NCBI GenBank assembly: GCA_965112735.1
Contig: OZ218963.1
Span: forward strand, 2,914,001-2,978,000
From: Phaeosaccion multiseriatum
Lineage: Eukaryota > Protista > Ochrophyta, other classes
Direction: 5' to 3'
DNA: 64,000 nt
The notes below the pieces were generated by a model. The model saw only the letters and a program-made list of their open reading frames with translations. It ran no database searches and was not told where the DNA came from. The position numbers were made by a program, and so were the translations under genes. Positions 1,640 through 48,686 of this stretch are shown piece by piece; position 1 is the stretch's first letter, and each line of letters begins with the position of its first letter.

Positions 1640-1830
1640 TCGACCCCTGACACACTATCCGCTATCCGCTATCGCCGGCGCCAGCCGGCGCGCTATCCGC
1701 TATCGGCCGGCGCCAGCCGGCGCGCTATCCGCTATCGGCCGGCGCCAGCCGGCACGCTATCCGCTATCGGCCCCCGGGGGCGCCGATAGCGCGCTATCGA
1801 GAATGTGGGCGATAGTGTGTCAGGGGTCGA
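1640..1830. mobile_element. MITE, subfamily C, 191 bp
   Basis: Perfect 20-bp TIR TCGACCCCTGACACACTATC / GATAGTGTGTCAGGGGTCGA; 6-bp TSD CCTCAG (1634-39, 1831-36); internal ~33-bp tandem units CGCTATCCGCTATCG(G)CCGGCGCCAGCCGG; related copies at 45563 and 45753. Confidence 0.92.
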
Positions 1831-23379: not shown

Positions 23380-24346
23380 GGCGTTGCAGTTGGAATTCGG
23401 TCTGTAGTGGTCTGTAGTCGTCATCTGGAGATGGCCCTCTTGCATGAACGGTTTCACCAGTCTCAGGTGTTTGATATAAAATGCCTCGCACCGCTCCACC
23501 TCCTGGCGGTAGTCCACCTGGTCGGCCCCTGACATGGTTCTGAGGCGACCCTGGTTCTTGGTTCTGGTTGCCAGGCAGGTTCCAGGTTCTGGGGGAAAGC
23601 CATGTAATAAGGCAATGATGAAGCAAGGCCAAGGCTATCCTGGTTCTGGTCGGCGCCAGCCGGCCAGGTTCCTGGTTCTGCTGGTGGGCTGGCCTGCCTG
23701 TCTCAGAACCAGCCATGTCAGGAGGGGCCGAACCTGGAAGGAGTGCGTGTCGGTGAGGATGTAGCTACAGCAGCCACACTGGCTGGCCCCAGGAGGAGCC
23801 GGGCGAGGCGTAGCTACAGATCCATTGTGACGCGCTTCGCGGTGATTCAAACCTCCTCTCATTGTGCCCGATCCTCCATCTTGCTTCTTGCTTGTCCAGC
23901 CGAGACTCCACAGCCAGCAGGGCCTTGAGGTCGTCGCCATCAGTCTCCACGATGCATCGAGAGGTCTTGCTTGGCTGGCTGAGCCGCTCCTCCGCGTTGA
24001 GCTCCTCCATCCTCCATCATTGAGCTGGCAGGGACGAAATGCATTGAAGACCATGACGGTGCCGCCCTTTGCCATCTTGTACAGCCTGGGCTTGGTGATC
24101 TGCCTCTCTCCTCGATGGTGGCTGGCTGGCTGAGCCTCAGGCAGGGACTCGCAGCCCAGGACTTGCTCTTGCTTCGCGAGGTGTACTTCTTCCCTCACTT
24201 GTTCCCTCACCCGGAATGTAGCTAGTCCGGGCGGGTTGTACTTGTCCACTTCGATGACCTCCACCTCCACCCGGACTCCGCCACGCACATCGTCCGCTGC
24301 GGGGAAGGTGACATGTATAGCTATTAGCTACACCCTTAAGTGCCAT
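23380..24346 (-). pseudogene. Degraded orphan coding sequence interrupted by a MITE and by frameshifting micro-duplications
   Basis: Coding-like segments switch frame at short duplications (TAGCTA-A-TAGCTA, GATGGAG x2, AAGCAAG x2). Removing the MITE joins ..YILTDTHSFQV to DYRQEVERCEAFYIKHL in frame. Confidence 0.5.
23522..23731. mobile_element. MITE, subfamily D, 210 bp
   Basis: TIR TCGGCCCCTGACATGG / CCATGTCAGG(AGG)GGCCGA; perfect 6-bp TSD ACCTGG (23516-21, 23732-37); homologous to 45652-46256. Confidence 0.92.
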
Positions 24347-42540: not shown

Positions 42541-44939
42541 CTAATGCTGCGCCCCGTCCTCCTCGTCGTCCTCGTCGTTACGGATGGCACTTAAAGTGCA
42601 GGCGGGCAGCTCCGGTGAGCGAGCTTGTGGGATGCAGTTCTCAAGCAGCACTTGTCTGGTCGCTGCGGCCACCTCGCTCCGCTCCAGCAAAATGATGCGG
42701 AAGGGGAAGAAGGTGAAGCGAAGGTACTGCTCGTCTGCGCTGGAGTCAATGATGCGGCACAGCTGCTTGAGATTGCTCACGGGCACGTTGTTGCACTGAA
42801 TTACGTGCAAGTGCTCCAGGCCCTCGAAGCCAAGATTTGCCTGGTGGCTCATGATTTGGCTGAGGAGAACCACCTGATCGTCCTCCTGCTGCTTCACCCC
42901 ATTGTGGGCCAGCTCCATGAGGTGCGTCATACCTGCACACTTATCTGCGTAGGCCATTTCCTCTCGAATGTACGGCTCACTCAACACGGTGAACACCAAT
43001 CCGGCCACAATCGCGTATGAGGGAGACTGCCCCTCGCTGTGCTGAGGCAGGAAGTCGCCCACCAGAGAAAGCGGCACCTTCACATCCACGCTCGCACCCT
43101 TCCGCCACACCGCCAAGTCCACTATATCCCCGGGGAAGAGCTGCGAGCAGTAGTACCGCATTGCCACCCTCTCACCCCTGCGAAAGGGGATACTTCCGTC
43201 GCTCGCCACGCGGATGCCGTCAATGCCCATAATCACATCGTAGGGCTGCAGCACCTTGGCCGCGGGGACCACACGCTCGATATCCGTCACCAACACGCCT
43301 GTCTTGACGTCCGTGGGGATGCCCAAGCTGCTCCGGAGCGCGTGGGACTCCAGCCCCTGCAGGCCCACACCCAGTCGTGGAAACCCCGTGTAGCGCCCGT
43401 GCTTCTCCACGTCGTAAAGAAAGTGCCTCACGACGTTTACGGGCACAACAAAGCCAATGTTCTCCACGTCTGCCCCTTCCAGCGACTGAAACGCCACCCC
43501 CACGAGCTCGCCCGCATCGTTTACGACAGGGCCGCCGCTGTTGCCTGGATTGATAGCGGCGTCAATCTGCACGGACAGTAGCGTCGTTCCCGCCTGTGCG
43601 TACGTGGTCATTTCTACTCTGCTCACCACACCTGCAGTGATGGAGATGGACTCGCCCCCCACAGGGTAGCCGAGTACGTTGACATCGTCCGTGAGCTCCG
43701 GTATCTCACCAAAACACAGTGGCGTCGTGTCCTCCCAAAATTCGTCGTCCTCCACCGTTATAATGGCGAGGTCGCTCTCCTCCCCCACAGAAATCACCTT
43801 TGCCGAGAACTTGGTCTCGCTGTCTCGCTTTCGGACCTGCAGGGGACCAGGAGCAAGACAGGGGCGGCAGCACCAACTCTGTGGTTAATGGTGTTGTCTC
43901 CTCTTCACCGGAGTACACACCCAGCACCCTATCCGGCACCACTTCAGCCGGCAGTCCTTCACCTCCTCGTCCGTTCCAAGCAACCAACCTGAATAGAGCT
44001 AGAGTACTCGACAGAGTGCGCATTGGTCAGTATGCGTCTCCCGTCGATGAGGAAGCCCGTGCTGGTCGACTGCTCCTGTTTGAGACGCTGGGGGGGGGGG
44101 AGGGGGGAAGGGACAGGATGATATAAACACGTGGACATGCGAGGGGGATGTTAGGTCCGTTCATTCAGGGCAAGTAAGACCGTGGGACTCTTCTGAAACT
44201 AGCTCACCTGCCAAGGCATTGAGTACGACGGGACGCAATGCGTACAAGAAATCCGTAACACGCTATTCAGGACGCTGTCCATGTGTTCACGGTCCTCCAC
44301 AAAGGAGACGCAGGCATCGAAGGCTTCCTCGTTCCTCAAGTCCCCCTTCGGCACCAGCTGCTCCCCCCCCTCCTCTCCAAATAAAGAGGTCCCATCCTTT
44401 ATCTCCGCCCAGCGGTTATCCTTCAGATAGTCTTGGCCGCCCCGATCAGCGATCATCTGCCTCCACCGCTCATCCAACGCCTCCTGCGCGTATCTCGCAC
44501 CACCGCCCGGCACCTCATGTCCCACAAAGGGGCGCGCTGCTTCTGCTGTTGTTGCTGTGGGCACGGTCAGTCCATCCTCGCTGCTGCTTCTCACCCTCCT
44601 ACTGTCTCTTCTTCTGCTCGCAATGACATTGCCCTTGCCGCCCAAGGCCAGTGTGCCTTTGCTCGTCGGCCTCTTTCTTCTTCTCCTCCTCCTCCTATCT
44701 CTACTGCTCCTGCTGTTATTACCACCTTGATGAGCAGCAGTCAAGGAGCCAGGCCCAAAGGCATGTGGCAAGGGGCTGCTCTTTCTAAATCCCTCACGGC
44801 CTGCCCAGGTTAGTCCTGGGTGCCGGACGAAGGCCCTCGACTCCTGTTGTTGAAGGGAAAGGAGGAGAGTCAAGTACGTAGCTGTGGTCGCTGCGAACCA
44901 CCGCCTCGGTGGTTGCAGATGCAATTGAATATATTGCAT
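42541..44939 (-). CDS. Deg/HtrA serine protease (DEG2/DEG9 type) with PDZ-like domains, probably plastid-targeted; 3 exons
   Basis: STGFLI..RRILTNAH, DLAII, QIDAAINPGNSGGP, ENIGFVVP, DGSIPFRRGER; N-terminal hydrophobic leader ending SRA-FV. Confidence 0.93.
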
Positions 44940-45054: not shown

Positions 45055-45545
45055 TCGGCCCCCCGCGGGGCTTCTCTGGCCCCCCGATAAGCAGAAGCCT
45101 GAGGCGGCCTGCGGCCGGAAGCAAGAAGCCCGGGGCTGGCCTGCGGCCAGAAGCCTGGCATAATCTCCCCCCCCCCCCTCCGTGAGCCTGCCTCGGCTCC
45201 AGGCGAGATTTCTCAGGCTTTAGGCTTCTGGGCCGTAGCCCCCTCCAGGCTTCGGGCTTCTGGCCGCAGGCCAGTGGTCAGGCTTCAGGCTTCGCAGGCT
45301 GGGAGAAAAATGGGGGACTTGGCAGGCTTTTCGCTACTTTCTGCAGGCTTGCTTCTGGCCGCAGGCCAGCAGCCGCAGGCTTCTTACTTTCGGCCGCAGG
45401 CCGCCGCAGGCTTCTGCTTTATCGGGGGCCCGAGAAACCTCGCCTGGAGCCGATGAGCCCCCCTGAGCCCCCCTGAGAAGCCTGAAGCCTAGACCGCTGG
45501 CCTGCGGCCAGAAGCCCGAAGCCTGGAGGGGGCTCGGGGGGTCGA
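45055..45545 (-). mobile_element. MITE, divergent subfamily-B relative in reverse orientation, hosting a nested copy
   Basis: Ends TCGGCCCCCC / GGGGGGTCGA; flanks TGGCTG(GG) and TGGCTG; its reverse complement aligns by eye to the subfamily B interior. Confidence 0.75.
45193..45453 (+). mobile_element. MITE, subfamily B, nested in the 45055 element
   Basis: 22-bp TIR TCGGCTCCAGGCGAG(A/G)TTTCTC; TSD TGAGCC, with an extra TGCC on the left; AGGCTTC motif repeated throughout. Confidence 0.85.
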
Positions 45546-45752
45546 TGGCTGTGGGTATACAGTCGACCCCAGTCAGCCAGCACGCTATCCGCTATCGCCG
45601 GCGCCAGCCGGCGCGCTATCCGCTATCGGCCGGCGACAGCCGGCGCGCTATTCGGCCCCTGACATGCTTCTGAGGCGACCCTGCTTCCTGCTTCTGGCCG
45701 GCGCCAACCGGCCACGCAGCCAGGTTCCAGGTTCTGGGGGAAAGCCATGTTG

Positions 45753-46152
45753 TCGACCCCTGACACGCTATCCGCTATCCCGGCGCCAGCCGGCGCGCAG
45801 CCCCCTCCAGGCTTCGGGCTTCTGGCCGCAGGCCAGTGGTCAGGCTTCAGGCTTCTCAGGCTGGGAAGGCTTCTCGCTACTTTCTGCAGGCTTCTGGCCG
45901 CAGGCCAGCCGCAGGCTTCTTACTTTCGGCCGCAGGCCGCCGCAGGCTTCTGCTTTATCGGGGGCCCGAGAAACCTCGCCTGGAGCCGAGGCACGCTATC
46001 CGCTATCGCCGGCGCCAGCCGGCTTTGGTGAGGGTTGTGGGGGCGTGCTATCCGCTGTCGCCGGCGCCAGCCGATCCGCTATCCGCTATCGGGGGCGGGG
46101 GGGGGCGATAGCGCGCTATCGCGAATGTGGGCGATAGCGCGTCAGGGGTCGA
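45753..46152 (+). mobile_element. MITE, subfamily C; nest level 3
   Basis: TIR TCGACCCCTGAC..GCTATC; TSD CCATGT (plus TG on the left). The empty site GAAAGCCATGTAATA is visible in the D copy near 23595. Confidence 0.9.
45798..45989 (+). mobile_element. MITE, subfamily B, left TIR missing; nest level 4
   Basis: Closely matches 45237-45453 and ends in GAGAAACCTCGCCTGGAGCCGA. Confidence 0.8.
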
Positions 46153-46738
46153 CCATGTAATAGGACCGTCAAGGCTGCTTCCTGCTTCTGGCCGGCGCCA
46201 GCCGGCCTGCTTCCTGCTTCTGGGCTGGCCTGTCTCAGAAGCATGTCAGAGGCCGACGCTATCCGCTATCGCCGGCGCCAACCGGCGCGCTATCCGCTAT
46301 AGGCCGGCGCGCTATCCGCTATAGGCCGGCGGCCGATAGCGCGCTATCGAGAAAGTGGGGTCGAATTACAGTTGCAACAAAAGCAAACCTCTCCACTTGA
46401 TGGATCCTTGATGGCAACAATCCAGCGATTGGCGGTGAGCGATCAATGTACGCTAGGGAGGTGAGGCATAGGCTATTTTTGTAGGGATGGTCGAGGATGG
46501 AGGTATTCACTGTCATTCACTGTGCTCATATGCTTCGCTCAGAGGAGAGTGACGCGCCTGAGGACCAGCATGTGACCTGTGAAGTGTGCGAGGGGGGAAA
46601 TCCCCCTTCGAGTGCCATCCTTGGACGAATGGTGTTCCTATTGCAAGATGATGGGAAGGAGCGCACCTCGCTCACTCACGCTAGAACGCTATACTCGGTA
46701 ACGGGGAGCTCACTTCATGAACCTCAACCCCAGCCATG

Positions 46739-48686
46739 CTATCCTCCTATCCTCGGCAAAGCAATGCTCAGGGACGACGCGTCCGAGCGCTGTCGCCCCA
46801 ATGTGACGCGTTGAGGAGATGGATCGTGTTGCTTCGCTGCTCCATGTGCCCAGTCGTCACGGGCCTGAGCCCTATCGCCAAGCCCTGCTGTTTCCGCCCG
46901 TAGCCGCACTGGCACTGCCGGGTCGCCTGCTGTGGGCCTCTCGAGCGGCGCCTCGCCACCACTGACGAGAAGAAGGTCCTTCGCAACCCCTTGCTGCGGG
47001 GGGGGTGGCGACTTCTGACGAAACTTCTTGCTGGACTGCTCAGTAGAGCTGCCGGGCTTGTGCTTGTGAAGGGGGGTGTGTCCGTGCAGAGAAGGAGCGG
47101 GCGGTAGCAGATCCAGCACACCATCACCATCCCAAGTTTTTTTGTGTCCTTCTCGCAACTGCTCGAGTTGATACTGCAGCTGTCTTTTCAGAGACGCATC
47201 CTCGGCGGGCGGCTCAGCAGCAGCGACACCGCCCTCTTGCTGCTGCTGCTGCTGCTGCTGCTGACGAGGCTTCCGAGCTGGATGGCGACGACTCTGCTGT
47301 TGCCAGTTTAGTGTGTGCCCCCCCACCTGGATGGACGGGGACTGGTCCAAGTACTCGGGGTGTTGATGCCGCAGCTGCTGCAAGTGCTCCATCGTCAAGG
47401 CGCTAATGACGCTGCCGGCTCCCAAGGAGGACAGATCATCCCCACCTTCGATGCCCACCGACCCGCCGGCTCGATCCTTCCAATCCAAGCTTCCCCCGCC
47501 CCCTCCTCTCCTCATGCTCAACCCGAGCGAAATCCCGCAATCCTTTTTCTCGACTTCTCCTCCTCCTCCCCCTCCTCCTGCTCCTGCTGCTGCTGCCGGT
47601 CCTGCTGCTGAGGTGCCATCGCCATCGAAAAGAAGCGTCCCAAACGGCGCTGTCGATCGGCCGGACGTAGGGCTGTCATTCCCGCTGATGCCGCCCTCCT
47701 CCCAACCGCCTGCACCTGTGAAGCCGAAGGACCCAAGGCCAAGCATGTCCTCCATCTGGCTGCCAATGCTTGCCCCGCCTTGGCTACTGCTCAACGACTG
47801 CCGCGACGCCCCGAGAGACGCTGACAATGTAGTAGCGAGCGATGCGGCCTTGGCAGTCGCTGCCGTTGTCGCTCGCAGCGCTTGGACCGCCGAGTGGGCA
47901 GCTGCTGTGCGTGCAGCCTTGTCGCGCTCGGCCTTGAGGGTGTTGGCCGTGGCTGCCCAGGGCTGGGCTCCGTTCTTGCCCTGGCGCAGGGTTAGCTCCG
48001 GCATGAAGAACTCCGTCTGTTGGGGGCCGCATGTTGGGCAACAGAGAGGCAGGATATGTCGGATCAGGAGGGTGGGTAGACCGGGGTCAGCAAGCCAGAG
48101 GTACCAAAGCAGCAAGAGGCGAGAGGCAAAGGAGCCGACTAATCAAATCATGCAGTGTGCCTCAATAGACTCACCACGAAGTGCAAGCAAAGCGGCACCA
48201 AGAAGAGGACTCAATTTCTGCGAATCTCTTTCCCCTTGCGAGAGAGTCCCCTCTCGGCAGACCGAAACTCCGCAAACCAACCAACCAACCAACCAACCAA
48301 CGAACCAACCACTAAACCAATCCCTTTCCATCGTTCGTACCTGCGTCCCTCCGTCCACGCTAAAGTCTGAGGCGGAAACCTGCAGGCAGACCGACTCCAT
48401 GCTGGCCAGCCGCTCTTCTTCTGCAGACACCAGCGCTCCGTGCCTTGCCCTCCACTGCTCCTTGGCGGCCCTCTCCTCCGTGAGTGCCTCAGTCTTGTCC
48501 TCGAGCAGTGCGTCGAGGCGGTCCTCTTCGGCTTTAGCATCCGTCAACTTGTCTTCGAGCTCGGCGATGGTGAGGCGCTCCGACTGCAGTGTTCGCCGAA
48601 CGGTATGTAGCTCCGTCGACAGGCTGTTAATCTGGAGGCAGGAGAGCAAGAGAGAGAGAGAGAGGGAGAGGGGGGGGGGGGGGGGG

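Follow-up and report, generated by a model that had tools for sequence, protein, structure and literature searches.

The window, by which we mean the whole 64,000-nucleotide stretch analysed here, is eukaryotic nuclear DNA with a GC content of ~57%, and it belongs to an assembly of 67.1 Mb in 22 contigs that represents the nuclear genome of an ochrophyte (stramenopile alga). The genome is gene-dense, with genes at nearly every locus examined, and microsatellites such as (GT)n, (GGGA)n, and (CCT)n are scattered across the whole window. The locus of interest adjoins a gene for a Deg/HtrA-type protease. Residues 150–244 encoded by its first exon align with the N-terminal part of stramenopile Deg proteins, and its closest relatives are those of Tribonema, Phaeothamnion, and Ectocarpus, at 58–60% identity. 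Because exon 1 occupies positions 44199–44939 of the minus strand, the start of the MITE nest described below is situated 116 bp upstream of the putative Deg ATG (44939), directly in front of the protease start as an earlier, preliminary description of this DNA had proposed. To the right of the nest, a Pfam search of the open reading frames at 46497–47611 gave no match. The same Deg locus of another strain was not found in metagenome contigs, among which records of close kin are possibly absent. The features referred to in the text are as follows.

44199–44939, minus strand: first exon of the Deg/HtrA-type protease gene (Pfam Trypsin_2 and PDZ_3)
45055–45545, minus strand: outer B-like MITE (B'), reversed relative to the B consensus and ~78% identical to it
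45193–45453, plus strand: B1, a full-length member of the B family, 261 bp, with 92% identity to the consensus
45546–45562, no strand: intergenic remnant of 17 bp between the two stacks
45563–46364, plus strand: outer C MITE, level 1, 191 bp after removal of D
45652–46256, plus strand: D MITE, level 2, ~205 bp after removal of the inner C
45753–46152, plus strand: inner C MITE, level 3, with TIRs matching at 20/21 nt (GTCGACCCCTGACACGCTATC)
45798–45989, plus strand: innermost B, level 4, with 90% identity to positions 41–250 of the B consensus
1640–1830, plus strand: solo C, reference copy, TSD CCTCAG
23522–23731, plus strand: solo D, reference copy and level-3 empty site, TSD ACCTGG

The presence of six related, nested MITEs at window positions 45055–46364 is confirmed; they have 6-bp TSDs, and every element of the group ends TCGRCYCC...GGRGYCGA. 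The left-hand stack consists of B1 inside B', an older, reversed B relative that is cut by its guest into segments 45055–45192 and 45454–45545. B' lacks B consensus positions 1–40 (the alignment runs from 250 to 41), has the termini TCGGCCCCCC...GGGGGGTCGA, and is flanked by the TSD TGGCTG/TGGCTG with two filler nucleotides (GG) at the left junction. B1 carries TIRs of 26 nt (TCGGCTCCAGGCGAG...) and the TSD TGAGCC, set off from the element by 4 nt (TGCC) on its left side. The 17-bp remnant to the right of B' is composed of a B' TSD copy (TGGCTG), the 5 nt TGGGT, and a TSD copy of the outer C (ATACAG); the targets of the two primary insertions were therefore in unique DNA, with 5 nt between them. 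In the right-hand stack, the outer C has a degenerate left TIR and a 16-nt deletion in its right TIR, and its TSD (ATACAG versus TTACAG, 5/6) is shifted by 1 nt. The TIRs of D match at 22/23 nt (TCGGCCCCTGACATGCTTCTGAG) and its TSD, CGCTAT, is perfect and flush at 45646–45651 and 46257–46262. The inner C is flanked by CCATGT at 45745–45750 and 46153–46158, with two filler nucleotides (TG) on the left. The match of the innermost B is limited to consensus positions 41–250, so that the left terminus (~40 nt) is absent and only the right TIR is present; its TSD reads GGCGCG (45792–45797) against GGCACG (45990–45995), a 5/6 match. Within the nest, a flush and perfect TSD is thus confined to D, the innermost B matches at 5/6, and the other four are offset by 1–4 nt. 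The preliminary description had placed six elements at these coordinates, with a B inside a B-like element (45055–45545) 17 bp away from the stack, and the elements and their nesting stand, with these corrections: the innermost B is without its left end, the termini of the outer C are decayed, and three TSDs are offset by filler.

Two smaller regularities accompany these junctions. A TSD displaced from the left terminus by 1–4 filler nucleotides occurs in three or four of the six nest elements, as compared with 5 of ~62 elements outside the nest (Fisher P = 0.02). Both B' (45534–45545) and the innermost B (45798–45812) stop at B consensus position 41. The sequence at that position, AGCCCCCTCCAGGC, resembles the true terminus TCGGCTCCAGGC, and an internal pseudo-end may therefore have served in transposition.

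The elements have all the features by which MITEs are recognized, namely a size below ~800 bp, which leaves no room for a transposase gene, TIRs, a TSD of fixed length, and many copies. After excision of guests, B measures 261 bp, C about 190–205 bp, and D about 205–210 bp; the TIRs of B1, D, and the inner C are 21–26 nt long and 92–96% complementary, and the element bodies are arrays of 8–32-nt sub-repeats. Exact termini of 14–15 nt occur 288 times in the genome for C (147 + 141), 181 times for D (91 + 90), and 114 times for B (57 + 57), while reversed-pattern controls for the termini of all three gave 0. Copies are 85–99% identical. Across the examined loci (~334 kb), 55 TIR pairs are flanked by an exact, flush 6-bp TSD, as against 1–3 pairs in each other register. 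The TSDs have no fixed sequence; the 54 sites compared yield a weak palindrome, C|CNRYNG|G, of 1.4 bits. Additional families (E, F, G, H, and I) have the same termini and body plan. Family F (termini TCGGCCCTGGAAGA, TSD TCTTCC; L034 2673–2959) contains eight tandem units CATAATCAGTAATCAGGCCGGCTGGCGCCGG, and these share the GCCGGC..GCCGGC hairpin with the bodies of C and D, which points to a common body plan.

The target-site signature separates these elements from well-known MITE groups. Tourist/PIF-Harbinger elements duplicate TAA/TTA (3 bp), Stowaway/Tc1-mariner elements TA (2 bp), and hAT elements 8 bp; with 6-bp TSDs of no fixed sequence, the families described here were assigned to none of the three. 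The TSD of the P superfamily is 8 bp (7–8), and this placement was likewise rejected at a TSD of 6 bp. The profile for the P-like RNase H (PF21787) had no match in this genome, nor in any control genome.

One of the solo copies has an additional property. Removal of the solo D (23522–23731) with one TSD copy takes out 216 bp, a multiple of 3, and leaves an open stretch of 319 aa that runs through the junction on the minus strand. Read on that strand, its TSD provides a donor, CCAG|GTTCGG, and an acceptor, GACCAG|GTGG. The solo D thus looks like an introner-like insertion that is apparently tolerated as an intron within an open reading frame.

The order of the insertions can be read by stepwise excision. 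Cutting out each guest with one TSD copy yields, in alignment, hosts that are of full length and collinear with solo copies: removal of D restores the outer C, which is then collinear with the solo C (1640–1830), and removal of the innermost B restores the inner C. BLAST across the empty-site junctions gives the same result, with the guest bounded by its own TSD and the host restored. The uninterrupted site of the level-3 insertion, GCCATGTAATA, is present in the solo D at ~23590–23603, where an intact site near 23595 had been noted in the preliminary description; the right end of this copy is 23731, a correction to that first reading. The insertion order is therefore outer C, D, inner C, and B, four levels deep, and the C-contains-D-contains-C-contains-B arrangement first proposed survives excision at every step. 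The nest also provides a relative chronology, with activity of C both preceding and following that of D and with B as the latest arrival, so that the overlapping activity periods already suspected for these families are borne out; the three MITE families of this alga were active during a common period and probably relied on one transposase. Ranking C and D copies by their identity to the consensus did not yield an age order, because copies differ in the number of sub-repeats.

We considered whether the structure could be a product of misassembled short repeats, or a mosaic formed by ectopic recombination or gene conversion between MITEs. The similar GC-rich sub-repeats of which the region is made, the imperfect or offset TSDs of 4/6 elements, and the truncation of one element would be in line with such an origin. 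Against it stand the collinear restoration of all hosts upon removal of a guest and one TSD copy, the perfect TSD of D, and the three offset TSDs that are nevertheless exact (6/6), each with a chance probability of ~0.2%. Furthermore, the nest is only 1.3 kb long, an assembly of 67 Mb in 22 contigs was presumably built from long reads, and comparable nests are present at many loci. We therefore judge an artefact or rearrangement to be highly improbable as an account of the whole, although four of the six elements are without a clean flush TSD and the innermost B is without a terminus, such that some of the steps may have involved deletion or aberrant events.

A second question is whether the stack arose where it is now found. 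With the whole 802-bp stack as query and the best 40 candidates scored, no second copy of the nest spanning its junctions was detected. The one partial match (C4:1369695–1370088) is an independent nest of D, E, C, and B, in which the insertion point of B in the C repeat unit differs by 5 bp from that in the window and the other flank of B is unique DNA. The left-hand pair, B1 in B', is likewise unique as a unit. Amplification of a ready-made composite was rejected on these grounds, as there is no junction-spanning copy among the 40 best candidates and the only partial match has another insertion point and other neighbours; the nest was assembled in place and is not a copied unit. Elsewhere in the genome, further independent nests comprise B in C, C in C, E in D, C in E, H in B, B in B, and D in C. 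The locus of the partial match extends over C4:1369094–1370126 (L059 1738–2770), and at C8:2439025–2439725 (L014 526–1226) a B is located inside the right TIR of a C, with the TSD GTGTCA. Some copies have identical TSDs: TACCCG is shared by three (L039, L041, and L042; C1:6330476, 6401116, and 6421156) and CGAGGG by two (L066 and L067; C1:660328 and 668359). These copies lie 8–90 kb apart, which indicates segmental duplications that carried the elements along, and each such set was counted as one event.

A family-library BLAST finds eight copies in the window, six in the nest and only two elsewhere, both solo, in agreement with the earlier count of six of eight copies in ~2% of the sequence. 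That six of eight points should fall by chance within 1.31 kb of the 64 kb has an approximate probability of 6e-7, and that two of the four primary sites should lie at most 17 bp apart one of ~0.003. For an unbiased genome sample we took all exact B ends on contigs 1–4 (33 loci, of which 30 are independent) and, on contig 1, the first C ends (7 loci, of which 6 are independent), with 5.3 kb each; the sample is small, at 36 focal copies and 27 TSD-defined elements. Nine of the 36 focal copies are nested in another MITE or lie within 16 bp of one, and 6/36 are strictly nested. Coverage by these families is 2.7% at 1–2.5 kb from focal copies, 6.0% over the sample as a whole, and 0.7% in the window when the nest is set aside; because the family library is incomplete, both the coverage and the nesting figures are lower bounds. 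The binomial probability of 9/36 is 4e-7 at 2.7% coverage and 2e-4 at 6%. That of the six strictly nested copies is 4e-4 at 2.7%, 0.02 at 6%, and 0.15, which is not significant, under a generous 10% null. Among the 30 B copies, nearest-neighbour distances are 0–16 bp in six cases, 17–250 bp in one, and 250–500 bp in two (Poisson P = 3e-4). The comparison of the nested fraction with expectation that the preliminary description had called for thus returns an excess, 9/36 against 2.7–6% coverage, and supports the view that nesting of these families exceeds chance genome-wide; on sequence counts of this kind, targeting and selection are both candidate causes. The target motif was rejected as the cause of nesting, since a position matrix derived from the solo sites gives MITE bodies an expected advantage of only 1.14-fold.

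The first of these causes would be active self-targeting, in which the arrays of hairpin sub-repeats putatively bind the transposase and resident copies capture donor complexes, becoming a 'safe haven' for new insertions. This reading draws on the spike of insertions at distance zero as compared with the adjacent 500 bp, for which the target motif cannot account, on the termini and GCCGGC..GCCGGC hairpin that guest and host families have in common, and on the second primary insertion, only 5 nt from the first element. Per base, moreover, insertions are ~8–18 times more frequent in MITE bodies than in microsatellites, where they ought to do as little harm, although microsatellites may simply be poor targets and the numbers are small. 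The distribution of guests within hosts speaks against it. The 15 guests are spread evenly, their mean distance to the nearer host end being 0.26 of the host length versus 0.25 if uniform; no bias is seen toward the host termini, where the transposase should sit, and the even spread argues against tethering to resident termini. In addition, ~75% of the copies are solo. We do not think that the transposase homes on its own copies, and self-targeting appears unlikely as the explanation of the nest. The fuller version, according to which an apparently undescribed transposase lineage with 6-bp TSDs would be recruited by resident hairpin arrays and prefer its own copies, is similarly improbable; if it were true, self-integration would constitute a built-in safe-haven strategy for persistence in a compact algal genome.

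The second cause would be selection alone. Insertion could be approximately random, with most insertions purged as harmful in a compact genome and those inside MITEs surviving, which is the classical explanation of nested transposons. The gene density of this genome and the uniform spread of guests within their hosts suit this account, as does the disappearance of the strictly nested excess at the 10% null. Short tandem repeats outside MITEs do not: they make up 9.7% of the sample, against 2.7–6% for MITEs, yet received at most one of the 27 TSD-defined insertions as opposed to five of the 27 in MITE bodies (P = 0.03 to 0.002). This deficit speaks against survivorship as the only cause, with the proviso that microsatellites may offer poor targets. 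Nor does survival inside MITEs explain why the two primary insertions lie so close together (5 nt) in unique DNA, and at least one solo copy lies inside an open reading frame, where it is apparently tolerated as an intron. Retention bias remains a full alternative to any targeting, but as the sole cause we consider it possible rather than probable. The genome-wide excess together with the contrast to microsatellites makes the choice between targeting and selection testable in this species.

We favour a reading in which MITEs, as non-autonomous DNA transposons that move by cut and paste, inserted here at least six times independently and the nest snowballed in a permissive landing zone upstream of a gene, and assign it a probability of roughly 70%. 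As to its drivers, we lean toward insertion bias and retention bias acting together. With 5 nt between them and unique DNA as their target, the two primary insertions make the site itself a hotspot with no need for the body of a resident MITE. The first to land were the old B relative and a C copy, 5 nt apart, in a short spacer upstream of Deg. A B element later entered the B relative, and separately D inserted into C, another C into that D, and B into that C. Each resident MITE would add DNA in which further insertion is both likely and harmless, so that the nest would grow like a snowball at a site that is probably a permissive gene-upstream landing zone. By these insertions, ~250 bp of gene-upstream DNA expanded to ~1.56 kb. 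As 84% of the 1.56-kb spacer upstream of Deg is recent transposon DNA, the nest is relevant to annotation of the Deg promoter.

Nested transposons are familiar from the intergenic LTR-retrotransposon clusters of grasses, in which nested layers give a relative chronology and expand intergenic space. Those nests consist of class I elements measuring kilobases in gene-poor DNA, whereas those described here are 200-bp class II elements in a compact genome, with a start codon 116 bp away. Nesting of one MITE in another is a known phenomenon; what is new here is the lineage and the group of elements in which it is encountered. Of 6,600 rice MITEs, more than 10% belong to multimers derived from independent insertions, as summarized in PMC5172404 (citing Jiang and Wessler, 2001); by the same summary, some MITE families self-insert and nested MITEs also occur in maize and mosquitoes. 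As far as that account describes them, the rice and maize multimers resemble the present nest in being made of small TIR elements that inserted independently, carry their own TSDs, and are associated with genes (PMC5172404). The corresponding shares are >10% of rice MITEs in multimers, on the figure quoted there, versus 6/36 strictly nested and 9/36 nested or abutting here. The density of these families is below that in rice and maize, and their fold-excess over coverage is accordingly larger. The host is an ochrophyte alga rather than rice or maize, and the elements have TCGRCYCC termini with a 6-bp TSD in place of the TAA of Tourist and the TA of Stowaway. Unlike the multimers of rice and maize outlined in that source, the nest reaches four levels within 800 bp.

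Drosophila P elements offer a parallel of another kind, as their double insertions stem from an insertion-site preference and are found near transcription start sites (McGurk and Barbash, 2018; PMC5932611). P-element hotspots share with this locus repeated independent insertions at the same few bases by gene starts and a weak palindromic GC-rich motif (PMC5932611). The P element, however, generates 8-bp TSDs and mainly head-to-tail dimers, whereas 6-bp TSDs and true nesting of different families are observed here.

Since B, C, and D share the TCGRCYCC terminus and the 6-bp signature, they probably depended for their movement on a single type of transposase that acts in trans and is encoded elsewhere. 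Candidate sources were inspected at several loci. A 7.6-kb pair of D-type termini (L001) was rejected as an autonomous element, as its two ends belong to separate D copies with host genes (SAS-6, RFC, and a cytidylyltransferase) between them. A transposase was not found in a 2.1-kb B-type pair (L051) or at an unpaired C end (L069). The profile PF02902 led to a Peptidase_C48 repeat of at least 3.7 kb with six copies that are ~100% identical, one of them at C2:1777472–1781146 (L074 1–3675). Three of the six copies have no exact B, C, or D terminus within 8 kb. The C48-bearing repeat is probably part of a recently active autonomous transposon.
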